The notes under the pieces are model-generated. The model made no database searches. It saw only the letters and a list, made by a program, of their open reading frames with translations, and was not told where the DNA came from. This document shows, piece after piece, positions 1 to 18,949 of a stretch of DNA of 18,949 nt. Every line of letters begins with the position of its first letter. Position 1 is the first letter of the stretch. The translations under genes were made by a program, and so were the position numbers. The stretch is from Macrostomum lignano (lineage: Eukaryota), in assembly GCA_002269645.1 (NCBI GenBank), contig NIVC01005238.1, forward strand, positions 1-18,949, given 5' to 3'.

Positions 1-26
1 GTTGCCAGGTACGAACTTGTTCGGGT
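1..26 (-). CDS. 5' end of a PAN/Apple-like exon of a second WSC-PAN paralogue (rest of the exon is left of the window)
   Basis: Bases 1-37 are identical to 12400-12436. This includes the TTTTTTGCAG acceptor (AG at 27-28) and the exon start encoding (H)PNKFVPGN. Confidence 0.75.
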
Positions 27-695
27 CTGCAAAAAAGCAATGAAACTCAAACTGTAGGCTGTAGGCTGTAGGCTGTAGCTGTCATGCATGACGTCGGCCG
101 CCTGATCGGTTAACGGCTTTATTTTTGCAGATTTGATTGCATTGCTCAGAGAAATCACAAAACGGAGAGAATTTAACTTCAAGCAGCGTTCATCAGCACG
201 TCTAGAACATGGATCCCGAACAGCAATCCGACGGCGGCGCGACTTTATGATGACGTATGACGTCGTTTTTCGTAGATTCGTGACGAACTTTTAGCGAACC
301 AAGGATTAGAGTCGACTTATAAATTGACTTGAGTCGAAAATGTATTTCATGGCTGGGATAATTTTGAGGTAGCTAATATTTAAGCTTTCAGCCCGCCAAT
401 TATTTTAAAAGCCTTTAGAATTTCCACTTCAGCTGATTGGATCGGTTGCTAATAATACAGCGCATTGTTGATCTTAAATGCCAACGCTATTTACTCTAAT
501 TGCACTTCAACCTCCTATCAAGCGCCATTAATTTATTTCCGTAGCATTTAGACTGAAAATAATCGATTTGGGATCCATTGTTGCTCAATTAATGAAAGCA
601 GACTCAAGCACCAGGGGGTCCTTGAATCAGATTCGTTGCAAATGAAATTTAGGGTAATTGGATGGGCCGATGCCAGGCAGCGGACAAGCTGCTCC
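1..695. other. Diverged duplicate of the WSC-PAN locus (intron plus upstream flank) with the WSC exon missing
   Basis: 1-270 aligns to 12400-12645, e.g. the shared GAATTTAACTTCAAGCAGCGTTCATCAGCACGTCTAGAA. About 360-695 aligns to about 13345-13648, e.g. GCCAATTATTTTAAAAGCCTT and GGCCGATGCCAGGCA.CGGAC.AGCTGCTCCC. About 700 bp of the right copy, including the coding exon, has no counterpart here. Confidence 0.75.
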
Positions 696-2229
696 CGTCG
701 TAGCTACGAACTACGTCGTAGCGTCGTAGCCATGCACATTTAAGTTGCTATATTAGGCTGTCTTAATAACTACGCATCAGCTACAGTCTATACATGTAGC
801 TCTTCCGTAGTTCCGGTTTAGCCCGATCTCTAACGGCTATGAGTCAGCGTTTAAATGATCGAATTCTGGTGCACACAGCTGATGCGGGGATGAGCTCCTT
901 CATCATTTTGACTAAGACCTGGTACATCCAGTTCCCTTGTCCCTAATTCCCTCTGGTACCGTATTGTGACGTTGCTAGTTTAAGGTGGTCCTGCAAAAGG
1001 GCCGTTGGACTATAGTTTCCCTTGCAATTTCTCATTTAAATTTCTCCAATAGTTTATTTTAACGTTTACTTGTAGTAGCGTGCAAATAATCTGTATCAAT
1101 TGCTAATTCACTGTGTATTTGGTAGACCTTGCGTTCGTCTGTAAATTTTAGCACGATCGATAATTTCAAGTTCCCTCGCCAGCCAATGAAAACTCTCCGT
1201 GTTTTATGCTAACCTTTCTGCGCTCTTTATTAACCCCCGCCTGGCGGCGGGCTGGGGGCCTCCTCACTTCTGGCTTCGGGCGTCTGGCTCTCGTTTTCCT
1301 TCTCTCTCCTGGCTGCCTCGAGCCTCCTTATCTCTCGCCATGGCTCCTCTGTCTGGGCCAGCCTGTTTACACACTGTACTCCACTGTGTACTGCCACGGC
1401 TAACGCCACTCTCACCGCTACTTATCTGCCTGTTTACTTACTACTCACTGCCTCCACTGTGCTCATCGCCATCACTCACTACGTTGCGTCGCCATCACTC
1501 ACTTCGCCTGCCACTCGACTTCATATTCTAATCACTTTCAAAACCATTGTTGCAGCCGCCAGTGCCCAGAACACTATAAGTTTTGTATTGACATTAACCA
1601 GTCTAATATTGATCTCGACAATAAACTAGCTACGGCAGTTTCCTGCCCTTATACACCAAGTGCTCCGCTACACAATCCGCTTCGCAAGAACTGACTTCGA
1701 TTCATTTTGGGACTACAACAACTTACGACAATTCTCGTCAAACAGCCCTTTTAAGGGTCATAACCTCTACGCCAATAACGTGACAGTATCCACAATAGCA
1801 GACTTTTCCCGAAAGAATCACTCACTCGTCTTGAATTGACGCTTCGTCTACTAATCATGGCCGGCGAGAAAGAGCGCGTGGGGTTTTCCTGATAGCGACA
1901 AGTGTTTCGAGGGATCGGTGTCCCTCGCCTGCCGCAAACTTATTCATACGTATATTTTCACCGTTACACCCAAAACCGATTGGCCACGCATAGATCGCAA
2001 AAACAACATAATATTATCGTAGCAAGTTGAGGCGCAGCTGGGCCAGAGATAATTGGGGGGAACGTCAGGGGGCAGCCCAGCCAATCAGACTGGGTGCGCA
2101 TCAAGCTGGGGCAGACAAATGGGGGTTGCGAGACAAAACGGGGCTGGGTAAACAACTTATGGGTGGGGTAAGAGTGCAGCTCCGGGGCACACCTGCCTGA
2201 GAGTCAAAGATTGCTCGTCAGTGCAAATG

Positions 2230-2455
2230 CATGTGTATGTGCTACTTTATAATTAAATGTATGTGCTACTTTATAATTACACGTATGTGCTAATGTATAA
2301 TTACATGTATGTGCTAATTTATGATTACATGTATGCGCTACTTTATAACTACATGTATGTGCTACTTTATAATTACATGTATGTGCTACTTTATAATTAC
2401 ACGTAAGTGCTAATTTATAATTACATGTATGTGCTAATTTATAATTACATGTATG
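2230..2455. repeat. 24-bp minisatellite, about 9 units, consensus ACATGTATGTGCTACTTTATAATT
   Basis: Tandem units can be read directly and show few substitutions. Confidence 0.95.
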
Positions 2456-2756
2456 GCGTCACACCAAAAACTTCTCAATAATCTCGAGCGCTTTCGGAAA
2501 GTCAATTCGATTAGACTGAACTGAGCGCTGATTCTTTATCTGACCCACTATATAGCTGCAAGGTGGCCAGGCTCTCACGTGCTCACGTGCTGCAATTGCG
2601 TGGCGCATCCGATGGCTGTACGTGTACAGCTGGTACAGTGCCGGTACTTTTGAGGATCGCAACTCCAACCCCGTACATGTACATATATTTCTACCGCGCC
2701 TAGCTCAGAGCTGCTGCCGTATCAAAGTAGTGAAATCTGGAACCAAACCTAACAGA

Positions 2757-3154
2757 ACTCTAAGCTAACCCACTCGGCTAGCAGTTCTACTCCTGGACAC
2801 AATAATACTTGTTGACATGCATTGTTGGTATTTTGTGATGAGTGCGAAGACAAAAATCCAGTAAATGGTAAGGAGGTGCGCATCATGACGACATGTACTA
2901 GCAGAGAAAACTTTGATACCAATTTGTATTTTGAGGAAGTTTAGCATGAATATATAGTTTATAAACATACATTTATAGTTAAAAAATACTTAGCCAGGAT
3001 ACATGTACCGTCAGGGGAAAATTTCGGATCAAAAAGTGCAAATTTGGTGAAAATCGGTTGAGCCGTTTTTTCTGAAATCAACCGCATACCTATAGATACC
3101 GACGTAGAAACAACTCATTTTACTAGTTAAATATATAATATATATTTAATAAGA
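2757..3154 (-). mobile_element. Probable non-autonomous Helitron-like element
   Basis: The minus strand starts A|TCTTATTAAATATATA, matching the Helitron 5' TC after A. It ends in a short hairpin GCTAGCC-GAGTG-GGTTAGC followed by a degenerate CTAG-like end. The internal plus-strand motif AAATTTGGTGAAAATCGGTTGAGCCGTT resembles animal non-autonomous Helitron families (pattern recognition, not a database hit). Confidence 0.4.
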
Positions 3155-3756
3155 TTAAAAGCTCGTTCCCACAGCTATCAAATAAAGCCAAACTTAGAGT
3201 GATCACACAGCTTGTCCATATTTTTCCGTCGCTTTGTACGAGTACATCAATGGCGTGTTTGATGATTGATGACTTTAGTTGATTGCCGGTGTGAACGAGT
3301 TTTAAGAATCCAAAAAATAAAATCTTCAGATGGTTGACCACATGGTTAAAATACTTAACGACAAATAAAAGTTTAGGAAAAGGGCAAGTGAAAAAAAGGT
3401 GTCCTAAATCACTAAAGCAGCTAGTACTATACAAAGCCATTCAATATCACTGAAATTTAAAGATGAAATTTTTAGTAAGTTGAAAGTATGACGCCACTAA
3501 AACAAAGCAGTGGGCCACTTGACGGCGAAGCCACTTCAGATAAAAAATTCACATTCCAAGCTGATGGGAGACTTTTGAGTTTTAACTGAGTTCAGCTACA
3601 GGTTAAAAGCTTAAAGGAACCTCAAAACGATCGAGAAGTGGAGAATATAAACTTTAAATCGAAAACCATGCAGATCAGGGTGCCCGCATAGCAAAATTAC
3701 GTATCCAATAGAAAGTTGGACGTCTCCGATACGTAACTTTTTTGGTTGCAGGAACG

Positions 3757-3918
3757 TCCCTGACACTTATCCAATTTTTATGATCCTCTAAAGAAGCTCG
3801 TTACTACAAAAATGGTGGAATAAATAATAATAATAAATAAAAGCATTATCTGTTCACCATTTTTGTAGAAACGAGCTAATTCTTTAGAGGATCATAAAAA
3901 TTGGATACGTATCAGGGA
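3757..3918. repeat. Foldback/MITE-like inverted repeat (arms about 62 bp, AT-rich TAAA loop)
   Basis: TATCCAATTTTTATGATCCTCTAAAGAAGCTCGTTACTACAAAAATGGTG (3768-3817) pairs with CACCATTTTTGTAGAAACGAGCTAATTCTTTAGAGGATCATAAAAATTGGATA (3855-3907). Looser pairing extends outward. Confidence 0.85.
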
Positions 3919-4712
3919 TACATTTGGATACGTTTCAAAAAACAATTTAAATTTGATGTTTGGCCAATTGTTTGAAGTTCTAACATAGCTAGTATAGACT
4001 GCGTAACCCGAACCGTGCACGCATATTTGTCACTATATAAATAAATAAATCCGCCAGTCGGTCAATTAATCATCTCCTACATGCAAAGGCTTCCCGTTTG
4101 TAACGGGTCATTTACGTTTTACAGGTTAATTAAATCGTCCCACTTTCTTAAAAACGTTTTGCTTAAGGTCACATTTAATGCGAATTGCTACTTTTAAATT
4201 GGGATTCATCAAAATTACTGCATTTACGAGCGTACATCGATATATGAAGTCACGAGAACAGAAGACTTTAGTAAGCGACGATGAAATAGAGTTAAGTTTT
4301 GAGATAGATAAATACGCGTTGATCGAAAATAGACCAGGGCTTCGTACCGCAAGACTAGTGTAAATAAAAAACTGAAAAACGGTTTAAGAAGACCAGAAAA
4401 AATTACATCAAACCAGAGGCCAATACACCAACACCCTGTAGAAAAATAAAAACTAAGTTTTCAAGTCAATTAAAGCATCCCCGTTGCTGACAAATAGATA
4501 GTGGGCTTGTTAAAATCGGATTCAAGTATTTTAAATTATTGGCCGGCATTACAAGGCCTATAGGTCCAAAATCAACACTTTTAGGCCACATAAGCAGTGT
4601 ACCCTTACCTAAAAGTTAATTTCCAGTGCGAAATACAGTAGAAACTTGCAGAGTTGTTATATTATAAATTATCTTTGCTAAAAAAAGAAAATCAACGAAT
4701 AACATTTGTTAA

Positions 4713-4718
4713 TTTATT
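4713..4718 (-). promoter_or_regulatory. Candidate polyadenylation signal of toxin-GTPase copy 1
   Basis: AATAAA on the minus strand about 95 nt after the TAA stop. The flank is AT-rich, so a chance match is possible. Confidence 0.3.
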
Positions 4719-4813: not shown

Positions 4814-7800
4814 TTAATTGTCTTCACTTATGGCTCTCTCACACAGCTGCAGTGTCTCAGAAATCCTATCTCCGAATGGATCCTCAATTTCTCGGGTCTG
4901 GGCGATGATTTCGGCAGACTGGCGAGCCTCCAACAAGTACTTCTTGCGCTCCTGCCAGTTGGGCTTGTGCTCCATCTCCTCGCTGGCGATGAGGTTGTCA
5001 ATGTACTCGACCACGCTAAGGGGGCATGGCCGAAGTGCCCATTTATCAAGCTCGTTGAGACACTTGCGGATAGTGACGATGTCGTATGTTAACTCGCTGT
5101 GCTTCTCCTTCAGATCTTGTCTCATGGCTGAAATCAGCTGCGTTTTATCTTTCCTATCTTTCACACTCTCTTCGTACTTTTTACAGATCGTCTCTACGTC
5201 CACAAGTTCCTCTTGCGTGGTGTGCACGAAATAATGATCGGCTGATTCGTGCTCCTTCCAGTTGCACTTCTTCGGACATACAGTGCAGCTGCCAAAAACA
5301 GTGATCGCCCGACACTTCCTCTGAATATCTTCGGGGCCCCTGGAGCAGTCATTGTGACAGGTGTTCTCACAGACCTTGCAGATCATGGCGTAGCGGCCTG
5401 GTCGAGTCATCTTCTTCACTTTCTTCGGCACCATCACTTTTCGTTTCTTGTTCATGTCCGCATCCTTGATCACAGCGTCCAAGGTTTTTACCAGCTCAAG
5501 CTCTTGTTCAATGCAAGAAATTTGATCGAGACACGCATTTACTTTGAATAGAAGCTGGTCCTTCACGTTTTCCAGCCTGTCACGGTGTCTTAAAACGTCA
5601 CGAGTAATTTTCAGTGATACGCTTTCTGACTGCTTCAACCAATTGAACAGCTCGTCATAGCTTATAAAGGATTGCTCCCAGTTGAGATGGTTTTGCTTCA
5701 GCATCATTTGGTGTTTTCGCTCTTCAGTCGAGCAGTCATGACTTTGTGGTTTTGATTCTGAGTTGTCGGAAAAAAGAACACCGTTGTTGAAGCTCTGGTA
5801 ATTTTTACAGGGTACATTGTCCTCTCTGAGTGCAGCTAAGGCCTGTGGCTCACCGCTGTCAGCGAATGTCAAGATCGGAAGAATTAACTTCTCAACATCC
5901 TTTGCGAATAGCGACAAAATGAGATTAAAGATATACTTCTGTGGCGCAGTTAGTCTGTTCTGCGACGCCTTCACAACAAAGCCGATCGCGTGCAGGACGC
6001 CTGTCATTCTCGGGATGCAGCTGCTATCTTCTCCGAGAATTCGAGCAATTTTCTTTACCGCTCTCTGATCCTCCTCAAAACCCCGAGTGTCTCCGAAACC
6101 CGGGGTGTCGATGACAGTCAGTGGGCAGTCCAGAGCACTCTTTCCAGAGCAGCATCCTCCTGAAGTGTCCACCGGGTGAAGGGTGTATACTGACACCTTT
6201 GACGTCTGAGAGTGAGCCTGATTGGGCTTACTCATTCGCTTAGAGGCAGTGGAGCTTGACTCTAATGAGCTGGGATCAACTTCAGAAATGAGTCTAAGCC
6301 GAAAAGGATCCTTATACTGCACTTTATAGAAAGCATTGGCGATTGCATTGACAAACCTGGACTTTCCCGTTCCAGTCTCGCCCACGACTAGCATATATTT
6401 TGAATGCTCTGTCAAGTTTTCCTTGCTCTCGCCAATATCAAACGACTCTGGGCAGTTACAGTCGCCCTCGGACAATGGCAGCTCTCAGGCAGCTTTAGAA
6501 GGCGCTTCTTGAGCTGAAAAATCTCCCCAGGAAAAGTTTTATCACCCTCTTTCTTCAGCGGCTTTGACTCGCACAGGACCTTACGAGCGTACTCGGAGCA
6601 AAGCTTCAGAGGATTAGTCTCGAAGTGAACACTCTTGGATTCCTCCGAGTCGCCAAATGCAGTCATCGTCGAGATCTTGGCTTTGAACTTTGTGCCTGGT
6701 TCGAGGTCGTGAATATCAATGCTCGTTTTGTCAGTTAATTTTGTGAAGACCAAGCACTTCGAGCTCTTGCTCGCCTGGTAGACTTTTATTCTGTAATGTA
6801 CTGGGAGACCAAGGTCACACTTCACAGCTGACCACGAAAGCTTTGACGTAGTAGATTTGATCTCTTCGCACACAATATTCTTCGGTGCAAGTGGCAGTTC
6901 CAGAGGACACCACTGTTGCTCTTTTCTGTACAGCTTGGTGATTTGGATCCGATTACTGTCGCTACGTGTAGACTCGCTTACCAGAGCAACAGCCACCTGC
7001 GAACCAAGGATGCATTCGTTTCTTTTGGCAACTTCGATTAGCTCATTCGCGAGTTTGTTTAACGTGTCATGATCTTCCGAGTCAATCCAGGTGTCGGCGC
7101 TTCGTTCCACAAAAAATGTATGAGTCACTTTATTCAGAAAAAGCCTCAAGTCCTTCAGGTAGGGAGATGCATCTGGTAAGGTCAGCTGAGCCAGTAACTT
7201 CTGATTGGCTGAACTTTCAAACTGCTGTTTGTCTATTGAATCCTTGATGAGCTTGATGCCCACTGAACTCAGTTGAGCTGCCAACGCCTGCAGAGCGATG
7301 CACTCCCTCTCTCGATTTGAAATCCAGCCAAGAAGTTGAGCGGGTCCGAACGGAGAATTTTCTCGGTAATTGGTCAACAGCTTGGCGATTTTGTCGCATC
7401 CTTTCTTGTGCTCTCGAGCACCTGGCAGAGTCTTCAACAGCTTTTCCGTGTATCTGGTCTTCATCTTCTCAACTAGGTTTACAAACTCTGAAAGCTCTGC
7501 GCGCTGCGTCTGCCAAGGACTCGATGCCAGCACTCGTTGCTGTGTTTCGGCCGCGCTGATGACATCATTGAGCTTCTGAAGATAGTCGCCAGCTTCGTTC
7601 AGCTGCTCATCCGTGATCTTCCGCTTCAGCATAGCCACTTTGCCTCCAAGCGTGCTCAGGGGTGTCAAGTATGCCACCAGTGGAGTCTTGGCTCTGTCGC
7701 TTGAGAACCTGCTCACACAGCCGAACGCCTCTCGCAAGGTCGTCGGTGGAGATTCAACATCGAAGTCACCGAAGTAGCGGCACTTCACCCTGTCATACAC

Positions 7801-9533
7801 GCTGTCGTCAAAGTCGCTGCTGTACTTGGGCGGCGCGTCGGACTCACTGAAGGCGGCTTTCAGAGCGGACACCATCGACTCGAGACTCTCTTCCGACGCT
7901 GAGGCCTCGCCAAGCAGCTCTCTCTCCTTTTCGAACACGAGAAAGGCATTGGCTCCGAACTTGATGCCCGTCACCACATGGGTCGCCGGGGTGTCCGCCA
8001 GCTGTTGTGGAAACTCGACGCCTCCACTTGGCTCCAAGTGCAGCTCGTCGAACCTTGTGACAATCCGGTAGGCCAGAGTGACTTCCTCGGAGTTGAGACT
8101 GGTCTTTGAGTCGTTCAGGTACCGACCAGAGCCTTCGACCTCGGTGTTGCCACACAGGAAGCCGAGCTTTAGATCCGGACTGAGTTTGAGCAGCTTCGCC
8201 TTGTCCGAAAATGTGCACTCTTTTTCGATGCTTATAGTTGGAGTTGGACTCACTTCCACTTGACTTTTGGTTATGTTGAGCTTTGCGGCTTGCGACCACA
8301 GCTTGGTCCCGGTGATGAAGCGGTCGTTTCGCGCATCGTACAGCGTGCCGAGAGCAACGGGTCGGCCCAGACAGGCCGTGCGGAGGTCCTTGTCATGAGT
8401 AGCTTCGCTACTATCTAAAATAACGAAATTGTAAGTAGTTCTACATGCAGTGTCAATAGTGCACTTATTAAGATGTCTCCACTTCTGCACCCAGCAACAG
8501 CATGTATAGCAAGGTTGAATGCAGCTAATATTTAGCTCAATGCACCTATTACGTCATCTATAAAGCATCCACCACCTGGCTGGCTACATTGCTGTGAGTT
8601 AGGCATATTTCTTTGACCATAACTTTTATAGTTGCTTCGCTGTTTTCAAAGTGTTCGGCAGCCGATCGTACTACTGCTGACAGACTCATCGAACCTAGGT
8701 TTTGCCACCTGTTTTAATTGTAAATTGGGAGTCACTACCGAATAATTGAAAGTGTGTTTGAAAAACTGATGACTGGAGTATTTTGAGGCCAATTTAATTA
8801 GATCCAGACAGATAGTCGCTGTGTTTATTTGCGATAGATTCACAAGAGGCAGCTTATGGATGATTAAATTGACAGGATGTCAGAGTAAGCTGAAATACCG
8901 ATTGCTAATTCCATGTGAAATTAGTCCTTCTTTCATACTACTCAATAGTATGAAACGTTCAGAATCAGAGAAATACTTAATTAGCCTAAATTAGCCTACA
9001 AAACTTACCAGTAAACGCGTTGAATCGCGTACTATTAGAATCTGCAGTTTTATCAGGCAAGCCCTGCTCCCAAACAAACATGCTTAAACATACGAGTAGA
9101 AAATTAACACCCAATAACAGTGATTAACTAATCTCGATATGATTTTCAGTGAGAGTGATACTATAACCCCACACGGTCATGAGCTCAACTGGACTACTTT
9201 TTACGCAACAAGCAAGCTGAGAAGTGTCGGGATCGATACGAGCTACAAAAGTGAATGCCTAAATGGCAGAAGCTTACTCAGTACAAGTCTGCAAGTCGGC
9301 TTAATGAGCCAATTTTTTGTTTCTGCCCTACTTGATGCTTCTTTTCTGCAGCAAGAATGTTGCATAAAAAGCTTTCTTCACTGAACACCGAAAGATGCAT
9401 GTAAGTTAGCCACTCGTTTTGAGGGCTGCGGAGTGTGCAAGCGACTGCGTATTACATCAGGCTGCTCACCAGTCGATCGACCTCTGTTGAACTTCTCCTT
9501 CAGGCTCATCTTGACGGATGTAACCTTCTTCAT
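4814..9533 (-). CDS. SNTX/verrucotoxin-like MACPF/CDC - FN3 - septin/AIG1-like GTPase fusion protein, copy 1 (join 9533-9470, 8414-4814; one 1-bp frameshift near 6470; about 1221 aa)
   Basis: ORF 6412-8490 carries the SNTX-family start motif ACLGRPVALGTLYDARND and ATHVVTGIKFGANAFLVFE, then FN3. ORF 4814-6475 carries GETGTGKS, SQT, DTPG and TFAD. Copy 2 is continuous across the junction (LPESCQCPADHCICPESFDIG), showing that the two ORFs are one gene. Exon lengths 64+3601+1 = 3666 nt = 1222 codons. Confidence 0.85.
5800..6400 (-). other. Septin/AIG1(GIMAP)-like TRAFAC GTPase domain (copy 1), approximate bounds
   Basis: G1 GETGTGKS (6359-6382), G2-like SQT, G3 DTPG (6098-6109), G4-like TFAD (5858-5869), plus HAIGFVVKASQNRLT..QKYIF. 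Confidence 0.85.
6617..6894 (-). other. Fibronectin type III domain (copy 1)
   Basis: PLAPKNIVCEEIKSTTSKLSWS...HYRIKVY...IHDLEPGTKFKAKISTMTAFGDSEES..VHFET follows the FN3 P..P.N...L.W...Y...L.PGT.Y...G.S pattern. Confidence 0.85.
7640..8385 (-). other. Stonustoxin-like MACPF/CDC pore-forming domain (copy 1), approximate bounds
   Basis: Motifs LGRPVALGTLYDARND, LKLGFLCGNTEVEGSGRYLND, THVVTGIKFGANAFLVF and CRYFGDF..PTT..EA match the stonustoxin/verrucotoxin/cytolytic-toxin family N-terminus. Confidence 0.85.
9470..9533 (-). CDS. Predicted first coding exon of copy 1 (MKKVTSVKMSLKEKFNRGRST + G|)
   Basis: The exon has acceptor CCTCAG (AG at 9546-9547), ATG at 9533 and donor G|GTGAGC at 9469. 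It ends in phase 1, which matches the phase-1 acceptor TTTTAG|AT at 8415-8416. Copy 2 has an acceptor (TTCAG|AT, 18917-18918) at the identical codon position. Confidence 0.65.
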
Positions 9534-9793
9534 TGTCGCTCGCACCTGAGGTCAGGAAAGTGCACGCGCTCTGATAAAGTTTCAGTTCTACTTGTACTTG
9601 TACAGAAGTAGCTACTTGTATTGGTGTCCAGGGTTCCTGAAAAGTTAGAGCTCTGAAACTTAATGAGCGAGTTATGAGGTATATTCCAATCTTATTTTCA
9701 TGCAGAAAAAAATAAGTCTACAGGAAATGTTGCGCAAGTCTAAGACAAGCAAAAAGAAAATGATAGCATACAGTAATAAATAACACTAGCAAA

Positions 9794-9895
9794 GGACAGG
9801 AACACCCAGTCATGGACAGAAACACCCAGCCATAGACAGGAACACCCAGCCATGGACAGGAACAATCAGCCATGGACAGGAATAGCCCCAGCCAT
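9794..9895. repeat. Short array (about 5 units) of the 20-bp GGACAGGAACACCCAGCCAT minisatellite
   Basis: Same unit as the edges of the 14105-14841 array. Confidence 0.9.
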
Positions 9896-10822
9896 CGAGA
9901 AGAACCTTCAACAATAGATGGAACAGCCAAAAGTTGAAAGCCCAGAAGAAAACTATAGAAAGCTACAGCCAAGGATTAAAATTGAACTCACAGGTAGGAA
10001 AATTGCAGATTTCCTTTTCAAAAGCAGACAAGATCAAAGTGAAATCAAGCCGAACCAAAGCATTTGCTCCGCAAGCAAGCGCTGTCCGCTAAAAGCTAGA
10101 CTGTATCTGTCCCTATTGTACTGTCAGTGAAAAAGGAACTTCCGTTAAACCCAAGCAATCTCCCCAAGCTGCAAATCAATAAGTGCGTCTGTCTGCACAC
10201 TCGCATGCGTGCACAAGCAAAGTGGTAATACACAATCCGACGTACAGTTCCTTGTAAGTTCCTCGTTCCTTGCTTAATCGTCTGCTACCACAAACGAGAA
10301 CCTCCACCCCGTCCATTCCGCTTGTCTTTCGAAATTGATTGAGGCTGTGTACCCGCTACCCGCTTTGAGAAAACAGACGGTGGCAATGCACATTCAAATT
10401 CTCGGAGACAAGTGTCGATTATTGAGCTATTTGAGGAAAATAAGTTAACGAAAAACAAACAGAGCTGTCTCAATGTTCAGACTGAGTTAAGTCAGATTGA
10501 ATTGGATTAAAATTGGACAGTGTCTGGGGCGAAAGGCCAAACTTATTTGCTTATCTACAATCAGTTAGTGAGTGTGACTTGGGCGTAGGTTAAAAAGGGA
10601 TGTTATTAACCTACAGATAACGACAGTTCACGCTTACTTGCGCATCCGAGGTCTTTCCGTCATAGACACCAAAAGAACAGACAGATCGTACGAGCGTACT
10701 TAATCTGCAGATATTCCTCGTTTTGCTCCCAGTCTTCATTCTTCAGTGAGGATTGGCCATTGCACTGCACTGGTAAAGAAAGAGCCCAGGAAATGAGCGT
10801 GAGCCGTCATATATGTAGGCCA

Positions 10823-10976
10823 TAGGGTAATATATCAATACCATAGACATTGTGAGGGCAGAAAGATGGAGAATCCGAGGGTCGCGAATAGATAGATAGA
10901 TAGATAGATATAGAAGCGACCCTCGAATTCTCCATCTTTCTGCCCACACAAGTCTATCGTATCGACTTATACCCTA
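10823..10976. repeat. Foldback element with a (GATA)n microsatellite loop
   Basis: 10851-10885 and 10916-10950 are inverted repeats matching at 33/35. The 30-nt loop is GAATAGATAGATAGATAGATAGATATAGAA, and imperfect pairing continues to about 10823/10976. Confidence 0.9.
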
Positions 10977-11093
10977 ATTTGCAAGGACGGGCAGAAACTC
11001 CATTTCTTGCCCTGTCTATGGTAACTCCGTACTATTTGAGTGTGAATCTTTTCGAATTTTTATTTCCTGCCCGCTGCCAATGTCTATGGTAAA

Positions 11094-11799
11094 ATTCACG
11101 GGTTAATGCTTCGTATAAGCATTAACCTGAGTTATTAACCTAAGTGTGAACCTGAAGATGCGCACTGTTGTGCGAAACGCGTCGTAACTAATTTAATATT
11201 GATGAATACAGAATTCCCAATTACCTCAATGTCGCGCGATCCTGTTTCAAATAGCGATGAATGCTGGCACGAAATCCAACCAGACTGTTGACACTGTAGG
11301 AATTCCCATCTTTACGCTTTAGAGAAACAAACCCGAGTCTCAGGTATTGCACCAGGTATCGCTCTGGCATGCCTTCGATGTTGTCCGGAAGACCATTAGA
11401 CTGCAGAAACTGCTTAAATTGCAGTGCAACGTGCTGCCTTGTCTTCACATCAGTTGATTGCGTTCGAGCAGTCGTCTCCACGGCTTGGATACCGTGAATC
11501 TCAGTTTCGTTGAGCTCTCGAAAGTCATATTCAGAAGCTTGTTCAAATGATAGATCTGCAAGATCTTCCAGTAGAGCATCAAATTCCGGATCCAAAGCTC
11601 TGCTGGTTCCAACTCCTGGAACCGGCAATCCAGTCCACTGGTCAATTAAAATCGTTCTTGCCCAGCAAATAGCTTTAAGAAATCCATCTCGTCATGATGC
11701 GAACCGCTTATAACGTCACCGTGAATCGATTTCAAGTCAAGGAGAGACATGTATCGTGATAGCACTTCTATGAGACATACGAAGCATTAACCCGTGAAT
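11094..11799 (-). mobile_element. Crypton-like (tyrosine-recombinase DNA transposon) deletion derivative bounded by 23-bp inverted repeats
   Basis: ATTCACGGGTTAATGCTTCGTAT at 11094-11116 and its exact reverse complement at 11777-11799 enclose a Crypton-like ORF fragment. Confidence 0.6.
11221..11628 (-). pseudogene. N-terminal (pre-catalytic) fragment of a Crypton/DUF3504-type tyrosine recombinase
   Basis: FRELNETEI...T...T...VALQFKQFL and SLKRKDGNSYSVNSLVGFRASIHRYLK match the R-K.DG..Y...SL......I.RYL signature of animal Crypton/ZMYM/QRICH1-type proteins. The ORF stops before any catalytic R-H-R-Y region and has no real ATG. Confidence 0.7.
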
Positions 11800-12192
11800 A
11801 CTATACATGCACCGTCGTCCGAGAGGTAACAAAAGTCGAGCTCCTGCAGGTCTATATATTGGTTTCCAAAGGAGCGCTACTTTTATAGGGGCGCAACTTT
11901 TTATGCTGCAATTTTGTCGAAGCGAGTTGGGGGTGACCCCTTGGCAGCTACAGTACAGTGCACGTGTAATTTACATGCACATTGGTAAGAGATCGACGTT
12001 GTATGCTCTTTCCAATTTTATTAATTATTCAAACTGAATGCACAGTGGCATACATGTATCACAATAGTGATACAGGCCGAAATCGCTTAGCAAAAGTTTG
12101 CAATCTGTAATCGATTGGATCGAGGAATTCAGAACCATTACATGCGGATTCGAATGGACATTTTCGGTGCTACTGTGCGAGCGCGGCCCCTC

Positions 12193-13285
12193 TCAGCCGC
12201 GAACGTAGAACTGCAGGCCCTGAATGCTCAGCAGAGCAGCCGGAATGGCGGGCACGTCCATGAAGTAGCACAGGTGCAGCTGCTGGGAGAATAGCACGGC
12301 CTGGCAGTCCCCGGTGCACAGGTAGATGCAGGTAGCCAGGCTGAAGCCGCTGGCAGACCGGTAGCTGATCCGAAACGCATTCAGTTTGAGATAGGACTCG
12401 TTGCCAGGTACGAACTTGTTCGGGTCTGCAAAAAAGCGATGAAACTCAAAACTGTAGGCTGTACGTCCATGACGTCTGGCCGTCTGACCGGTAAAGGCTT
12501 TATTTTTACAAAATATTTATCGCTCAGAAAAATTACAAAGCGAAGAGAATTTAACTTCAAGCAGCGTTCATCAGCACGTCTAGAAAAAGGATCTCGAACA
12601 GCAATCCGACGTCGGCGCGACTTTTTGATGACGTCGTTTTCTGTCGAAGCAATGCCAAAAAGTATGTATTTGTCATCGAACGTCGATAAACCTCGAGAAC
12701 GTTGGTCGACGCTGTCGACATCGGATTGCTGCTGTACGGGGGTGGCTTCAAGACGTATCTTGTACGCACATATGCAACCAGCTGTACGGGGATGGCTTCA
12801 AGACGTGTCATGTCATGCACATCTGCAACCAAAAGCAAAACATGCTCACGAGTGTAGTGCTGCCGGAACACCGAGTTACGAAAAGCGGATTCACATTTCT
12901 GAGTGATGTTACCGCTGCATGTTTTAAAGCAATCACTCTCACTCAGTTGTATTTGCCCGTAGGAGCTCCCACAGAAGCAGTGAAAACCGGCCTGAACTCC
13001 AAAGTACGGGTGACTGCCGAGAGCGCACAGGGCGCTGCACAGCTCGTGTGTCATGCTGTGGCTGGAGGCCCTGAACAGCTCTAGTTGATGAAGACCGACA
13101 CCGCCAATCTTGGTGATGTCGTAGTTCCTCTGGTCAGTCATCTGCCACAGACCGTTGACGGCGTCCAGGTAGCAGCCGACGTAGGTGAAGTTGCGGCCCC
13201 TGCCGGCGCTCGAGGCGATGCCGATGACTCGACAGGCGAGCAGCAGGCCGGCTGCCAGGAGGATGAAGCTGTTCAGACATCGCAT
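12193..13285 (-). CDS. Secreted WSC-domain + PAN/Apple-like protein (join 13285-12850, 12425-12193; 222 aa)
   Basis: Signal peptide MRCLNSFILLAAGLLLACRVIGIASS and WSC motifs YVGCYLD...MTHELCSALC...YFGVQAGFHCFCG...C...CSGN..QKC....RNSVF. The donor C|GTGAGC at 12849 and acceptor TTTTTTGCAG at 12426-12427 are both phase 1. Exon 2 reads HPNKFVPGNESYLKLNAFRISYRSASGFSLATCIYLCTGDCQAVLFSQQLHLCYFMDVPAIPAALLSIQGLQFYVRG*. Total 436+233 = 669 nt. Confidence 0.85.
12731..12831. repeat. About 50-bp tandem duplication inside the WSC-PAN intron
   Basis: GCTGTACGGGG.TGGCTTCAAGACGT...GCACAT.TGCAACCA occurs twice (12731-12780, 12781-12831). Confidence 0.85.
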
Positions 13286-14104
13286 GATCAGCTGCGTCTT
13301 TGTGAAATCAAGGATTATTGACTTACCTAAGACTTGAAATTATTTTTTGAGTTGGCTACGGATTCGAGCTTTATTAGCGATCTCAAGCCAATTATTTTAA
13401 AAGCCTTAAGAGTTTCTACTTTCAGAGCATTTGAAATCCCAATGCTATTCATTAAAATTGCCATTCAGCCCTCGTTTTTGATTTTTATTTAGAAAAATAA
13501 ATCAAATTGAGATCTATTGATGCTCAACAATTGAAAGCAGACCCAAGAACCATGTGGGTCCTTAAGCAGGCGATGTTTAGATTTTTCGAAAAAATACAAT
13601 TTTTGGTAAATTAGATAGGCCGATGCCAGGCAACGGACGAGCTGCTCCCATTATATCTACTCCGAAATTCATAATGCGTTTACGATGTACGTCAGGTTAG
13701 CGTGAAACACAACCCTGCACAGATTTATAGGCAGGTATGGTTAACATACATTATAGCTAGTTAGTGCACTCGTATGCAAGTAGCATGCATGCAGTTCTGT
13801 GGTTCCGGTTATCCAGTTATTCCGGTTCATGGCTATGAGGAAGAGTTTAAACCTAACGGAACATTTGGTTTCTTGCTTTAGTGGCCAGGCACTTAAGAAG
13901 GCGTTCATCTATACTCAGAAACTGCTCCATGGTGTGATGTCTATACTCGTACAAGCTGTTGAAAACCGCGGATTTTTTAACACAATAGATCAGAAGACTT
14001 TCTGAGACTATGCAAACACTTACAGCATCAGGACAGTAATCTAACTAAATAATTTTTAGTATATAGGAAGATGAGATTAATTTGCAGCTGTTAAATAAAA
14101 TGAA

Positions 14105-14841
14105 AAACACCCGGCCATGGACAGAAACACCCAGCCATGGACAGGAACACACAGTCATGGACAGGAACACTCAGCCATGGACAGGAACACTCAGCCATGG
14201 ACAGGAACACCCAGCTATGGATAGAAACACCCAGCCATGGACAGGAACACCCAGCTATGGATAGAAACACCCTGCTATGGACAGGAACACCCAGCTATGG
14301 ATAGAAACACCCTGCTATGGACAGGAACACCCAGCTATGGATAGAAACACCCAGCTATGAATAGAAACACCCAGCTATGGATAGAAACACCCAGCTATGG
14401 ATAGAAACACCCAGCTATGGATAGAAACACCCAGCTATGGATAGAAACACCCAGCTATGGATAGAAACACCCTGCTATGGATAGAAACACCCAGCTATGG
14501 ATAGAAACACCCAGCTATGGATAGAAACACCCAGCTATGGATAGAAACACCCAGCTATGGACAGAAACACCCAGCTATGGATAGAAACACCCAGCTATGG
14601 ATAGAAACACCCAGCTATGGATAGAAACACCCAGCTATGGATAGAAACACCCAGCTATGGATAGAAACACCCAGCTATGGATAGAAACACCCAGCTATGG
14701 AATAGAAACACCCAGCTATGGATAGAAACACCCAGCTATGGACAGGAACACCCAGCCATGGACAGGAACACCCAGCTATGGACAGGAACACCCAGCCATG
14801 GATAGAAACACCCAGCCATGGATAGAAACACCCAGCTATGG
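14105..14841. repeat. 20-bp minisatellite, about 37 units, consensus GGATAGAAACACCCAGCTAT
   Basis: Near-perfect tandem units with no spacers and one single-base insertion at about 14701. Confidence 0.97.
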
Positions 14842-15477
14842 TAGTTGCACAAAAAGCCCATAAATTAAACCTCCAGCCAAGTTAAAACCCAACTCGCAGT
14901 TTGAAAGAAATTGCATATTTATTTCCCATACTGGACAGGAGTGAGAGCGCACGTTTTTATTTATTGATTTTTGACTGCGTTTATAACGGCTATAGCAATA
15001 ATATTATGATGTAAAAAACATCTAAAAAGTTAAACGGGATGATGACGGATAAAAACAGTTTGACTGAGAGCGCTTTAAACAGAAACACGCTTAGCACAAT
15101 ACAAATTATCAAGGAGTTAAAACAAAAAAGAATGCTTCATATAACGAGTAGCTAACGATTGGTTGATGAATGATGCTGGCCTAAAGTTAAAAACTGAGTT
15201 TTAATTAGGTAGGCATAAATAATTTAGTAGAGTATTCATAAGCTCAAAAATGTAAGCCTTCAAAGAAATTATGAATTATTACGGTGCAACTTATTATTAT
15301 ATCGCGATTACTGAGAAGTCGAAGTTAATTAGGAGAAATTCGAGAGTAAATTACATTGAAAAAGCAATTGTCTTAATAATAATAAAGCAGCCGCAAATCT
15401 GGAATGAACTGAGTGAAGATTAAGCGTAAGCTACACTTCGTGAATATAATATCAGTTTAGTTATAATAGCAGTCAAA

Positions 15478-15752
15478 TTAATAATAATAATACTAAATAC
15501 TTCGTTACACCTGCCCTAATGGGCAGATGTGCAACCGACAGCTCAGCCGCAGCCATTGCTTGGCGCATCTGAAGGCTGCGTACGGCTGTTCAGTCCAAGG
15601 ACTGGGGGTCGCCACACCCTCAATTACCCCAGCTAATGCTGGCACCCATTTTACAGCTGGGTGAACTGAAGCAGTGCAGAATTAATTGCCTTGCTCAAAG
15701 ACACCATGCAGTTGTTATAGTGGTATCGGGAATCGAACCCACGACCTTCAAG
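15478..15752 (-). mobile_element. 5'-truncated tRNA-derived SINE with a CORE/MIR-like central domain and (TAT)n tail
   Basis: The minus strand reads AGGTCGTGGGTTCGATTCCC (B box), then GTCTTTGAGCAAGGCAATTAA...CTTCAGTTCACCCAGCTGTAAAATGGGT (CORE-like), and ends TATTATTATTAT. No A box is present. Confidence 0.75.
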
Positions 15753-15830
15753 GTAACTTTTCAAGGTAAAAAACTTTTTAAGTTTCAAAAGCTATTCAAG
15801 ACTATGCAAAAAGCCAATTAGGTTCAGGGA

Positions 15831-18800
15831 TCACTTGGGCTCACTCGTGGCGCTCTCGCAGCGCTGCAGCATCTCGGCGATCTTGTTGCCGAACGGATCT
15901 TCGCCACGGCGAGTCTGGGCGATCATTTCGGCAGATTTTCGAGCCTCTGCTAGGTACTTGACGCGGCTCTGCCAGCCAGGCGTCTGCTCCATCTCCTGGC
16001 TGCTAATGAGGTTATCAATGTACTGCACTACGCCTAGAGGGTACTGCCGAAGTGCCAGCTGATCAAGAGCTTCAAAGCACTTGTGAATTGTCACAATGTT
16101 GTACGTGAGCTCCTGGTGCTCTGCCGAGAGTTCTTCTCTCAGAGTTTCAATCAGTTTCCGTTTAGCCTCCCGATCTTTGACGCTGAGCTCGTACTTCTCA
16201 AAGATCTCCGTCACGCTGACGATCTCCTCCTCGGTGGTGTGCACGAAGTAGTGATCCGAGCACTCGTGCTCCTTCCAGCTGCACTTTTTCGGGCACACGG
16301 AGCAATTGCCAAAGAGCGTGAAAACTCGGCACTTTTTCCTGCTTTCTGGAAGTCCCCTGGAACAGTCGTTGTGGCAGGTGTTCTCGCACACTCTGCAGCG
16401 CATCACGTAGCGACCAGGACCTGGAGTCTTCTTCACCTTTTTCGGCACCATCACTTTCCGAGTCTTGTTCATGTCGGCGTCCTTGATCACGGCGTCCAAT
16501 GTATCCACGAGGTTGAGCTGCTCTTCAAGTAGAGCCATTTTATCGAAGCACACCTGCACCTTTTCCCACATCTTCTCCTTTGAGTGCTCCAGCGTGCTGC
16601 GCTGCCTCAAAACATTTCGAGTGGTCTTCAGGGAGATCGCATCAGCTTTGCTTAGCCAATCGAACAGCTCAGAGTAGCTAAACCAGGCCTGCTCCCAATC
16701 GAGCTGGCTCGCCCGAAGAGCCATTTGATGCTTTTCTCTTCTGCTGAACAGGCACCCTGCGGTTCCGGCTCTGAGTTGTCGGAGTAAATCACGCCATTGT
16801 TAAACTTCAGGATTTGCTTATACGGTACATTGTGCTCGCTTAGAGCAGCCAGTGCCTGTGGCTCATTGCTGTCTGCAAATGTCATGACCGGAAAATTATC
16901 TTTGCGATATCCTTTCCAAACAGGGATAGAACCTGATCGAAAATGTACTTTTGTGTCGGGGTCAGTCGGTTTTGAGACGCCTTAACCACAAAGCCAACGG
17001 CGTGCAGGATGCCCGTCATTCCTGGAATGCAGGTGCTGTCTTCTCCGAGCACTCGGGCGATCTTCTTAACGACTCGCTGATCCTCTTCGAGACCCCGGGT
17101 GTCTCCGAAGCCGGGAGTATCGATGACGGTCAGCGGGCAGTCCAGGGCACTTCTGCCCGAGCTGCACCCGCCGAGGTGTCCACCGGATGAAGAGTATACA
17201 ATGACACCTTGGACGTCTGAGAATGCGCCTGGTTAATAATTTGACTTATTCTATTTGAAGCAGTGGATTCCAACGCCGAACATTCCGGGGCGGTTTCAGA
17301 AATCAAGCGCAGTCGAAAGTTGTCCTTGTATTCAACTTTGTAGAAGGCATTTACAAGCGCGTTGATGAATCTGGTTTTTCCTGTGCCAGTCTCGCCCACA
17401 ACCAGCAGGTACTTCCCTGGACTGCTTTTGCACGCGCCAATGTCGAATGACTCAGGGCAGATGCAGTGGTCCGCAGGGCACTGGCAGCTCTCAGGCAGCT
17501 TTAGGAGTCTCATTTTGAGCTGGAAAATCTCGCCAGGAAACGCTTCGTCGCCTTCTTTCCTCACGGGCTTCGACTCGCACATGATCTTTCGCACGTACTC
17601 GGAGCAGAGCTCCAGAGGCAGCGTTTCAAAACGGACGCTACGGGACTCAACTGAATCCCCAAACGGAGTCACTGTAGAGATCTTGGCCTTGAATTTGCTA
17701 CTTGGATCGAGCTCGTGAACGTCAGTAGTGACTTCGTCAGTGAGTTTCGTGACGACAAGCTCACTCGAGTCTTTTTTGGAGGAAACGTAGATATTAATTC
17801 GGTACTGCACAGCTGGCGCAAATTCGCTCTTCACGGCCGACCATGAAAACTTGGCCCGAGTGGACTTAATTTCCTCGCATGACAGATCCTTCGGTGGTGG
17901 CGGAATCTCCAGAGCGCACCACTGGTGTCCCTTTCTGTACTTTTTTATAATTTCGATTCGGTCCGTATTGTTGCGACCGGCTTCGCTAATTAGAGCTGCA
18001 GAAACGGTGAATTTATCGTCTGTTCTGTTTCTTTCAACAATGGACACAAGCTCGTTCACCAGTACAATGATCTTTTCATGCTCTTCAGTGTCATGCCAGG
18101 TATCCCGGCTCCGCTCCACAGTAGAGTAATTGCTTTCACCATTGAGGAATCTCTGAAGACTTTTTAAATAGAAAGATATCGTTGGAAAATTAAGCTCAAC
18201 TAGAAGCTTCTGTTCAGCTGATTTTTCAAACTGCTGTTTGTCTGTGGCATCCTTGATGAGCTTGATGCCCACTGAGCTCAGTTGAGCTGCCAACGCCTGC
18301 AGAGCACTCACCTCTCCTCCAGTCTGATCGAAATCGAGTCAAGAAGAAATTGAACGGAAATGTCCCGGATTGGTCTCGCTCAGAGTAATTTTCATCGGAC
18401 ACCATCACTGCTCTCTTCCGAGCTGAGCCTGCAGAGCTCTCTCCCTTTTCCGGACTTGGCTCCGAACTTGATGCCGTCACCACATGGGTCGCCGGGGTGT
18501 CCGCCAGCTGTTGTGGAAACTCGACGCCTCCACTTGGCTCCAAGTGCAGCTCGTCGAAACCTTGTGAGCAATCCGGTAGGCCAGAGTGACTTCCTCAGAG
18601 TTGAGACTGGTCTTTGAGTCGTTCAGGTACCGACCAGAGCCTTCGACCTCGGTGTTGCCACACAGGAAGCCGAGCTTAGATCCGGACTGAGTTTGAGCAG
18701 TTTCGCCTTGTCCGAAAATGTGCACTCTTTTTCGATGCTGATAGTTCGAGTCACTTCCACTTGACTTTTGGTCATGTCGAGCGTCGGCGGCTTGCGACCA

Positions 18801-18916
18801 CAGCTTGGTCCCGGTGATGAAGCGGTCGTTTCGCGCATCGTACAGCGTGCCGAGAGCGACGGGTCGGCCCAGACAGGCAATTCGGAGGTCTTTGTCTTTG
18901 AAGGAACCGTGGGCAT
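15831..18916 (-). pseudogene. SNTX-like - FN3 - GTPase copy 2, main exon (frameshifted and with an internal deletion as assembled; pseudogene or consensus error)
   Basis: It is colinear with copy 1 from the acceptor (18917-18918; DAHGSFKDKDLRIACLGRP) to the stop (15831). There are 1-bp losses at about 17170, 16890 and 16733, several indels in 18396-18800, and about 480 bp missing at 18306-18395. No in-frame stop was seen in the reconstructed 15831-18305 frame. Confidence 0.75.
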
Positions 18917-18949
18917 CTGAACAGCAAAGTAGTGTGGAAACAAGAATGT

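Follow-up and report, generated by a model that had tools for sequence, protein, structure and literature searches.

Two large pore-former genes and a small WSC-PAN gene lie close together in an 18,949 nt stretch of the Macrostomum lignano genome (contig NIVC01005238.1, hereafter the window). Does this adjacency mark a functional pairing, or were unrelated genes copied together? An earlier note on this DNA favoured the former. It described an alternating array in which a secreted WSC-PAN protein and a cytosolic pore-former with a GTPase domain may make up a co-duplicated sensor/effector module.

Organisation of the locus

The minus strand holds all four elements: WSC-PAN copy A at the left edge, pore-former/GTPase gene G1 (4814-8425), WSC-PAN copy B (13285-12196) and a second pore-former/GTPase gene, G2 (15831 to the window end). 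This order and strand, already given in the earlier note, are real; ORFs, Pfam matches and self-alignment agree on them. Intergenic distances are 2.5-3.8 kb. The self-alignment offset is ~11.0 kb for G1 and G2 and 12.4-12.9 kb for the WSC-PAN copies. The spacers contain a recombinase-like ORF relic as well as satellites. Features are listed in Table 1.

Table 1. Features of the window, with coordinates, strand and basis of assignment.
Feature	Position	Strand	Basis
Copy A exon 2, first 26 nt (8 codons), cut by window edge	1..26	-	identity to copy B exon 2 start
Copy A intron remnant	27..262	-	83% identical to copy B intron 12400-12634
Copy A replacement or deletion scar, 133 bp	263..394	-	no similarity to 12640-13386
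Copy A upstream region, homologous to region upstream of copy B ATG	395..707	-	self-alignment
G1 3' reading frame, 553 aa: GIMAP/Toc/septin-class GTPase, two-helix stalk, Cys/His-rich beta domain, C-terminal helical bundle	4814..6475	-	Pfam, AF2, homologues
G1 5' reading frame, main exon: SNTX-type MACPF/CDC, helical domain, divergent linker, fn3	6412..8425	-	Pfam, PDB 4WVM
Putative gene-conversion tract common to G1 and G2, 1.1 kb	7240..8423	-	identity, dS
Short array of 20-bp satellite, also present at 14105-14841	9775..10012	.	self-alignment, repeat analysis
Copy B exon 2 and stop codon: PAN/apple-like domain, four cysteines	12193..12425	-	splice phase, translation
Copy B intron, GTGAGC...TTTTGCAG, 424 nt, 50-bp x2 repeat inside	12426..12849	-	splice and repeat analysis
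Copy B exon 1: start codon, signal-peptide-like N-terminus, WSC with 8 cysteines	12850..13285	-	Pfam WSC
20-bp satellite, ~37 copies, spacer between G2 and WSC-PAN	14105..14841	.	repeat analysis
G2 3' two-thirds: linker, fn3, GTPase, C-terminal domains, in pieces	15831..18346	-	tblastn of P0001, ORFs
G2 junction, about 0.5 kb MACPF/helical coding missing	18346..18396	-	alignment to G1 and public contig
G2 5' part of main exon, MACPF start, three frames	18396..18949	-	ORFs, tblastn

By blast alignment, the locus is ~99.9% identical to public contig NIVC01002895.1 (L001) over 10.4 kb, and both assemblies give the order G1, WSC-PAN, G2. Off the ragged alignment ends, the window and L001 differ by one mismatch and by single-base length differences, and by nothing else. 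Three of the length differences fall within 7982-18300, two of them in short homopolymer runs of G2; one more is in G1. L001 carries a ~65-bp duplication relative to window 7982-8046. Both structural discrepancies, this duplication and the G2 junction, fall within the near-identical G1/G2 tract.

G1 and G2 encode MACPF/CDC proteins with a predicted GTPase

G1 consists of two overlapping ORFs in different frames (6412-8490 and 4814-6475), which meet at a single frameshift near 6460-6475. A TTTTAG splice acceptor precedes the main exon at about 8426. The stop codon is at 4814-4816, with AATAAA 96 nt downstream. In ORF 6412-8490, Pfam identifies MACPF_SNTX and Stonustoxin_helical, both above cutoff, and fn3. 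Against the PDB, residues 34-430 align with both stonustoxin chains, alpha and beta (4WVM, E about 1e-32). ORF 4814-6475 gives P-loop type matches to AIG1 (26.9 bits, cutoff 27) and Septin (24 bits); for the pore-former protein P0001, AIG1 scores 30.5 bits against the same cutoff. A PDB sequence search with the GTPase part gave no match. Modelled with AF2 (pLDDT 86), the GTPase half has GIMAP7 (E = 1.6e-7), GIMAP2, Toc34/33, septins and bacterial dynamin-like proteins as its best fold matches. We retrieved 395 homologues of the G1 3' reading frame. Among G homologues, GxxGxGK, the threonine of a conserved QAHSQT motif, DTPGFGDT, TFAD and a Cys/His cluster are invariant. The N-terminus of P0001, judged by reading rather than by a predictor, lacks a signal peptide. 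Hence, Pfam, 4WVM and the N-terminus bear out, in essence, the earlier assignment of an SNTX-type MACPF/CDC protein with a GTPase and without a signal peptide.

G would be cytosolic and some 1,200 aa long. It would comprise stonustoxin-type MACPF/CDC and helical domains, a divergent linker, fn3, the GTPase, a stalk, a Cys/His beta domain that is probably zinc-binding, and a helical bundle. Over its first ~400 residues, G shares homology with the MACPF/CDC and helical domains in each of the two stonustoxin subunits (stonustoxin/neoverrucotoxin family; 4WVM), and the absence of a signal peptide is a further likeness. The SNTX thioredoxin-like domain is present in relatives of G but was not detected by Pfam in the flatworm copies. 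The fish toxins end in PRY-SPRY; in its place, G has fn3, the GTPase, stalk, zinc-binding domain and helical bundle. Furthermore, no venom context is known for G, and its pore formation is predicted.

GIMAP/AIG1, Toc34 and septin GTPases dimerise on GTP binding. G resembles them in its P-loop, its invariant DTPGFGD and its best fold matches. Conversely, the motif at the expected G4 position is TFAD, and a long stalk, Cys/His domain and helical bundle come after the GTPase; in this overall layout G is nearer to dynamin-like or GBP proteins. The GTPase of G is also fused to a pore-forming domain; we found no such fusion described for GIMAPs or septins.

In the window, G2 is broken up among five or more frames. 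Its 3' pieces are ORFs 17130-18311 and 15831-16724 with a short piece between, and frame breaks occur near 17.17 kb, 16.89 kb and 16.7 kb. G1 (7335-7866) and the public contig (L001 11562-12093) both contain the stretch missing at the junction; the 5' mini-exon of G2 lies beyond the window (L001 10001-10066). Except for the ragged final ~40 bp by the 18346 junction, the window part of G2 differs from L001 by two single-base length differences only. Judged from this comparison, both the frameshifts and the missing 0.5 kb probably reflect long-read assembly differences rather than biology.

Database searches gave 3307 pore-former/GTPase homologues, many of them 1150-1300 aa long and alignable over their full length. 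These full-length homologues include proteins of electric ray, a characiform fish and M. lignano itself (P0121 and P0122; Mlig032689g1 and Mlig029040g1), the last two being unlinked to the window locus. As far as sequence tells, the architecture is widespread in animals. At three loci (L003-L005) the gene calls are split, with MACPF_SNTX and the helical domain followed by Thioredoxin_11-fn3-GTPase.

G1 and G2 are old paralogues with a near-identical 5' tract

Window positions 4824-7335 (G1) align to 15841-18346 (G2) with 70% identity (E = 0), and 7866-8394 to 18396-18896 with 90% identity (E = 0). With the L001 version of G2, nucleotide identity is 83-99% in the 1.1 kb tract and 54-79% downstream. 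Over the first roughly 390 codons, dS is 0-0.45; elsewhere, over about 850 codons, it exceeds 1.3 and is saturated. For these ~850 codons dN/dS is 0.07-0.3. Such substitution rates indicate that G is under purifying selection, and that G1 and G2 are anciently diverged outside the conversion tract. The 3' flanks of the two genes have no similarity, in line with the earlier remark that the toxin-gene UTRs do not align.

The M. lignano genome is a hidden-polyploid one. Mis-joined alleles or homeologues could therefore give the appearance of two units where there is truly one G gene and one WSC-PAN gene. The assemblies do disagree within the near-identical tract, at the ~65-bp duplication and the missing 0.5 kb, and single-base indels also separate them. 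However, because synonymous sites are saturated over about 2.5 kb and the flanks are unalignable, G1 and G2 are old paralogues and not alleles. The gene order common to two assemblies, 99.9% identical over 10.4 kb, also argues against such an artefact, which we consider highly improbable.

Copy B is a predicted WSC-PAN gene and copy A a remnant

Splicing of copy B would yield a protein of 222 aa in which a predicted signal peptide precedes a WSC and then a PAN-like domain; an AATAAA signal follows 171 nt after exon 2. The WSC domain proposed earlier is confirmed by Pfam (E = 2e-11, 44 bits against a cutoff of 27.8). Its companion PAN domain misses the sequence threshold (PAN_1 E = 1; 9.7 bits, cutoff 21.4), but is suggested by a moderate-confidence AF2 model of exon 2 (pLDDT 65) with a beta-alpha-beta fold. 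All top Foldseek matches of this model are PAN/apple domains, with E of 0.02 or weaker; they include the HGF N domain, plasminogen, SML-2 (TM 0.55, rmsd 2.0) and a Colletotrichum oxidase. No WSC-PAN homologue was detected among 5.8 billion proteins, and the public assembly carries no annotation for the gene. Carbohydrate or protein binders with WSC or PAN/apple domains include Kremen and polycystin, which have WSC domains, and apicomplexan PAN lectins such as SML-2. Fungal copper-radical oxidases (6RYX) combine PAN and WSC modules. Copy B resembles such binders in its complete 8-cysteine WSC domain and in the PAN/apple matches of exon 2. It differs in being a minimal two-domain secreted protein, without a catalytic or membrane part. 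WSC-PAN is probably a secreted, putative glycan or protein binder.

Copy A is far less complete. Its 26 nt of exon 2 repeat the first bases of copy B exon 2 exactly, with the same TTTTTTGCAG acceptor ahead of them; used as a tblastn query, the spliced protein matches 33..1. No PAN cysteine of copy A falls inside the window. Positions 1-256 align to 12400-12634 (83%). Beyond this, 133 unrelated bp take the place of 747 bp in copy B (5' UTR, ATG, WSC exon and intron start), and 263..394 contains no signal-peptide or WSC ORF. Homology resumes upstream (395-429 against 13387-13421, 91%; 546-707 against 13487-13660, 73%). Thus, the partial PAN gene reported at the left edge amounts to 26 nt, with the WSC exon and start codon replaced. 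The WSC-PAN non-coding flanks do align between copies, as stated in the earlier note, at 73-83% identity. Nor does the array continue past G2: tblastn of the spliced protein found no further WSC/PAN copy in the 10 kb beyond (L001 1-10000). Order and strand aside, the alternating array is weaker than the earlier note has it.

A probable tandem block duplication with later gene conversion

The locus probably arose by one old tandem duplication of a block, after which gene conversion acted in patches and parts decayed; the WSC-PAN adjacency would be a by-product and no evidence of a functional pair. An ancestral block of ~11-12 kb would have carried two unrelated same-strand genes, G and WSC-PAN. 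After its duplication, spacers would have turned over via satellites and mobile-element relics. Non-allelic gene conversion would have re-homogenised patches, the WSC-PAN non-coding DNA earlier and the first 1.1 kb of G recently. Copy A would then have lost its first exon.

We invoke conversion because 73-83% identity of the WSC-PAN non-coding DNA is too high for neutral sequence of G1/G2 age. Gene conversion requires homology already present; hence, the original block probably already contained both genes. Each unit retains homology in its two genes, pore-former and WSC-PAN, and one shared duplication event is plausible on sequence grounds, the history being drawn from two units. The uneven identities between segments mean that no single clean block duplication suffices, as the earlier note cautioned, and that at least two extra conversion events are required.

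Alternatively, the genes could have separate histories: G1 and G2 as an ancient tandem pair, and WSC-PAN copied later beside the other G copy, for instance by a small segmental or transposon-mediated duplication. The WSC-PAN non-coding identity does look much younger than the saturated G1/G2 dS, the unit offsets are unequal (11.0 kb against 12.4-12.9 kb), and satellites and the recombinase-like relic occupy the spacers. Set against this, copy A is collinear with the gene through upstream region, intron and exon 2, in an equivalent position and orientation to G, which would be rare by random insertion. Gene conversion is also independently documented in G, 4 kb away. We therefore regard separate histories as unlikely.

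No WSC/PAN neighbour found at eight other pore-former/GTPase loci

Could selection have kept a secreted WSC-PAN lectin and a cytosolic pore-former/GTPase adjacent, and co-duplicated, as a sensor/effector or venom-like cassette? Each unit has both genes on the same strand, the WSC-PAN region is still alignable or re-homogenised in both, and G is under purifying selection. One homologous locus (L008) has a caspase-domain gene flanked by two tandem homologues, an arrangement consistent with a defence or cell-death setting for the family. However, the adjacency is a single event copied once rather than repeated independent linkage. The pairing is not intact, since copy A lacks the WSC exon and start codon, and no third WSC/PAN copy follows within 10 kb of G2. 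Gene calls and tblastn found no WSC or PAN neighbour at any of eight homologous loci in other animals; these are distant taxa with mostly prokaryote-style gene calls, in which a diverged small lectin gene could escape. The intergenic distances disfavour an operon, and a secreted lectin has no evident route of interaction with a cytosolic protein. Of the module proposed earlier, co-duplication is plausible; one adjacency, a decayed copy A and the eight loci speak against the module itself, which we think very unlikely.

The block duplication with later conversion and decay has parallels in the tandem, conversion-prone immune-type clusters of animals, with their same-strand paralogues, mosaic of old and recent sequence and pseudogenised neighbours. 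Tandem pore-former/GTPase copies occur in other taxa too, at two of the eight comparison loci (L004 and L008), without WSC/PAN. Our literature search found no link of the family to immunity, by expression or challenge, in any species. The G proteins are likely to be GTP-regulated intracellular pore-formers, which may act in defence or cell death. Dimerisation or oligomerisation of the GTPase might seed the MACPF ring or permit its formation.

Genes of the array and their state in two assemblies

Every gene in the window lies on the minus strand (see the table). The locus is eukaryotic, with GT..AG introns, and no RNA families were found in the window by Rfam. G1 and G2 are the two paralogous pore-former/GTPase genes. 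Between them is WSC-PAN copy B, a lectin-like gene, and a relic of a second lectin-like gene (copy A) is at the left edge. Broken reading frames were treated as separate pieces, without frame repair.

Features of the array, in window positions
Feature	Position	Strand	Description
G1 5' frame	6412-8490	minus	MACPF_SNTX, Stonustoxin_helical and fn3, all above Pfam cutoffs
G1 3' frame	4814-6475	minus	P-loop GTPase; AIG1/Septin-type Pfam matches at or just below threshold
WSC-PAN copy B exon 1	13285-12850	minus	signal-peptide-like N-terminus and WSC domain
WSC-PAN copy B intron		minus	between exons 1 and 2; 424 nt, GTGAGC...TTTTGCAG
WSC-PAN copy B exon 2	12425-12196	minus	in phase with exon 1; followed by a stop codon
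G2	15831 to window end	minus	paralogue of G1

The two G1 frames overlap out of register near 6460-6475, corresponding to a single frameshift. A TTTTAG acceptor is found at ~8426 and, hence, G1 has a 5' exon further upstream. No counterpart of the G2 5' mini-exon and intron was found upstream of G1. The paralogues align at 4824-7335 (G1) and 15841-18346 (G2) with 70% identity, and at 7866-8394 and 18396-18896 with 90% identity. In the window, G2 is spread across at least 5 frames and ~0.5 kb is absent at 18346-18396.

The best protein match of the G1 N-terminal frame was the M. lignano hypothetical protein P0001 (BOX15_Mlig008863g2). This is the G2 protein, annotated on the public contig NIVC01002895.1 (GCA_002269645.1; here L001), where G2 is nearly intact and encodes 944 aa. 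The P0001 gene model also has a 22-codon mini-exon, which lies 950 bp further upstream and outside the window. L001 aligns with window positions 6725-18949. Across 7982-18346 the two are 99.9% identical; one mismatch and three single-base length differences separate them, the ragged last ~40 bp aside. Thus, the window and L001 represent one flatworm locus in two states of assembly or polishing. Two of the frame breaks in G2 correspond to single-base length differences from L001 in short homopolymer runs. Structurally the two disagree at only two places: at window 7982-8046 L001 has a duplication of ~65 bp, and at 18346-18396 the window lacks the 0.5 kb noted above. Both fall within the tract where G1 and G2 are near-identical by conversion, which suggests mis-assembly in one of the two versions. 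The overall pattern has the signature of differing long-read assembly and polishing. Because the lesions bear this signature, we do not take G1 and G2 as established pseudogenes. Intact relatives are encoded elsewhere in M. lignano by the unlinked paralogues P0121 (1211 aa) and P0122 (1163 aa).

Upstream of G2 in L001, ~3 kb from the mini-exon, positions 6551-7645 hold a 365-aa open frame that is not among the called genes. It has several hydrophobic stretches and is receptor-like by eye. Microsatellite-like repeats abound in the 10 kb around it.

A WSC protein gene and its relic

Splicing of copy B yields a 222 aa product, and an AATAAA motif occurs 171 nt beyond the stop codon. In view of this stop codon and poly(A) signal, we reject the idea that these are upstream exons of G1. 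The WSC domain is established from sequence (PF01822, 43-44 bits against a cutoff of 27.8; Pfam E = 2e-11), with its eight cysteines at residues 38, 83, 87, 103, 105, 119, 123 and 131. The PAN domain is probable. Exon 2 has four cysteines with PAN-like spacing (C-x3-C-x3-C-x11-C) and scores only 9.7 bits against Pfam PAN_1 (cutoff 21.4; E = 1). A single-sequence AF2 model of exon 2 alone had a pLDDT of 65 and a pTM of 0.54; it was built from position 12432 and so begins with three non-exonic residues. All top Foldseek matches of this model were PAN/apple domains, the best with an E of only 0.02.

No WSC-PAN homologue was returned from a 5.8-billion-protein collection, including the M. lignano annotation, by a word-indexed search; with the G1 N-terminal frame, such a search gave only P0001 and missed M. 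lignano paralogues later found exhaustively. Nothing relevant on Macrostomum WSC proteins was found in the literature. The intron also contains two copies of a 50-bp direct repeat (88% match; 12731-12831).

Copy A retains 26 nt of its exon 2, and the acceptor before them is that of copy B. Its intron is 83% identical to that of copy B, and the upstream region 73-91%. The 747 bp that in copy B include the 5' UTR, start codon, WSC exon and start of the intron are replaced by 133 unrelated bp. There is no WSC or signal-peptide frame anywhere in 1-2500. When 1-2500 and 11000-14000 were scanned with Pfam in each of the three minus-strand frames, a single WSC domain was detected, and no PAN domain. 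Similarly, there was no further WSC/PAN match in the 10 kb beyond G2 (L001 1-10000). Hence, the partners are not both intact in each unit. Copy A lacks exon 1 and the ATG, and the frame disruptions of G1 and G2 in the window assembly may be artefacts. The alternating array described in the earlier note keeps its order. What it contains, however, is a pair of pore-former genes, a single intact lectin-like gene and a relic without exon 1.

Old duplication and recent conversion

G1 was compared with the L001 version of G2, using separate frames only. Over the 5' part of the main exon, up to about codon 395, the genes are 83-99% identical, with dS of 0-0.45. Past this point identity drops abruptly to 54-79%, dS exceeds 1.3 (saturated) and dN/dS is 0.07-0.3. 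The mosaic therefore indicates that the duplication is ancient, that both copies have been under purifying selection and that a tract of ~1.1 kb has recently undergone gene conversion. Given these dN/dS values, we reject positive selection on G.

The order and periodicity of the array are real and far beyond chance. As the earlier note observed, non-coding sequence around WSC-PAN still aligns between the two units (73-83% identity), whereas the 3' flanks of G1 and G2 do not align at all. Neutral sequence dating back to the G1/G2 split could not have kept the former level of identity. A single later duplication of contiguous sequence cannot account for the young segments (5' G and WSC-PAN), since the old 3' part of G lies between them. 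A single clean block duplication, already questioned in the earlier note, does not match these uneven values.

Most simply, a block holding both genes would have been duplicated once, long ago, and non-allelic conversion would then have affected it in patches. In the spacers, satellites and mobile elements would have turned over, and exon 1 would have been lost from one lectin copy. Co-duplication of the two genes, as first proposed, is plausible in this form. Less probably, the lectin segment was duplicated separately and later; the high identity of its non-coding sequence would fit this. The locus is a tandemly duplicated, conversion-prone gene pair of a kind already known.

The spacers contain several other elements. 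A 20-bp satellite (consensus AAACACCCAGCTATGGATAG) occupies two non-equivalent spacers, at 14105-14841 (~37 copies) and 9775-10012 (~5-12 copies), and yields spurious repetitive ORFs on both strands. Nine copies of a 24-bp tandem repeat (90% match) occur at 2234-2455, between G1 and the WSC-PAN relic. Positions 1000-2000 have a composition unusual for the window (GC skew -0.25, AT skew -0.2) and hold no convincing coding frame. An isolated 135-aa ORF on the minus strand between WSC-PAN and G1 (11221-11628) has no Pfam match. We take it to resemble the N-terminal domain of tyrosine-recombinase (Crypton-type) element proteins, and it may be a mobile-element relic.

A stonefish-toxin-type pore domain joined to a GTPase

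G1 contains an SNTX-type MACPF/CDC domain (PF24674, 32.6 bits; cutoff 27), and residues 34-430 match both stonustoxin chains by phmmer (4WVM chains A and B; E = 2e-32 and 3e-33). A helical, FAT-like domain follows (PF21109, 33 bits; cutoff 27). The thioredoxin-like SNTX domain PF18078 gave no match to G1 or P0001, even with a limit of E <= 10. It is present in the homologues P0010 and P0050 and at three of the related loci (L003-L005). G1 and G2 diverge most in the corresponding stretch (42% amino acid identity). Whereas the fish toxins end in PRY-SPRY, Pfam found no SPRY match at the C-terminus of G1 or P0001; fn3 and a GTPase take that position.

For the AIG1-type G domain (PF04548; cutoff 27), the scores were 26.9 bits in G1 and 30.5 bits in P0001. 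The septin-type domain was below the Pfam threshold (PF00735, 24.0 bits; cutoff 26.2). No PDB match for the GTPase part was found at the sequence level. An alignment of 77 members has an invariant GxxGxGK, the threonine of a conserved QAHSQT, DTPGFGDT, TFAD and a Cys/His cluster. The AlphaFold model built from this alignment (pLDDT 86, pTM 0.83) shows, besides the G domain, a stalk of two helices, a Cys/His domain rich in beta structure and a helical bundle. Its top Foldseek matches were GIMAP7, GIMAP2 and Toc34 (E = 1.6e-7 to 1e-4). Toc33 and bacterial dynamin-like proteins were also near, and septins ranked beneath GIMAP and Toc. The earlier domain reading is largely right for WSC, SNTX-type MACPF/CDC and GTPase, with PAN only probable. 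GIMAP, Toc, septin and dynamin-like families undergo nucleotide-dependent dimerisation or oligomerisation on membranes. By analogy, MACPF ring assembly may be under GTPase control.

An animal-wide family

Exhaustive searching with P0001 yielded 3307 homologues, of which 445 reached E <= 1e-30. Many are 1150-1300 aa and align end to end. They include the two unlinked M. lignano paralogues and proteins of an electric ray and a characiform fish. The GTPase half alone matched 395 proteins, from bivalves, crustaceans, fish, lizards, an echinoderm, sponges and a nematode. At L003-L005, MACPF_SNTX and the helical domain are followed directly by Thioredoxin_11-fn3-GTPase. Tandem pore-former/GTPase copies occur at two loci, L004 and L008. 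At L008 a gene with a caspase domain (Peptidase_C14; 5832-6623) lies between two such tandem homologues. No functional study of an SNTX-MACPF/GIMAP-like-GTPase fusion was found in the searchable literature, nor any mention of the locus tag.

Linkage of the two families and implications

The earlier note proposed a linked module of secreted WSC-PAN sensor and cytosolic pore-forming effector. Gene-to-gene distances are 2.5 and 3.8 kb, and intergenic spacing of this size argues against an operon. None of the eight homologous loci in other organisms (L002-L009) has a WSC/PAN neighbour, by Pfam marks or by tblastn with WSC-PAN (nothing at E <= 1), and linkage of the families in other taxa was therefore not borne out. 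What speaks for a module is a single duplicated adjacency. Against it, one lectin copy has decayed and no conserved linkage is seen, and the proposal is not upheld. The full reading is an uncharacterised family of GTP-gated cytosolic pore-formers (SNTX MACPF driven by a GIMAP-like GTPase), extending from sponges and flatworms to fish, serving cell-autonomous defence or cell death, and kept in Macrostomum beside a secreted WSC-PAN lectin as a real two-gene module. We consider this, taken whole, very improbable.

As an ordinary product of tandem duplication and gene conversion, the array matters little. The SNTX-MACPF/GIMAP-like-GTPase architecture is animal-wide and more interesting than the array itself. 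The useful by-product is the finding that, in a large family spread across animals, a stonefish-toxin-type pore domain is joined to a GTPase of the GIMAP/septin class. The flatworm M. lignano is amenable to transgenesis and RNAi. Its known genes of this family are G1, Mlig008863g2, Mlig032689g1 and Mlig029040g1. With at least four paralogues, it is a practical system in which to ask if a GTPase can gate an intracellular MACPF pore.
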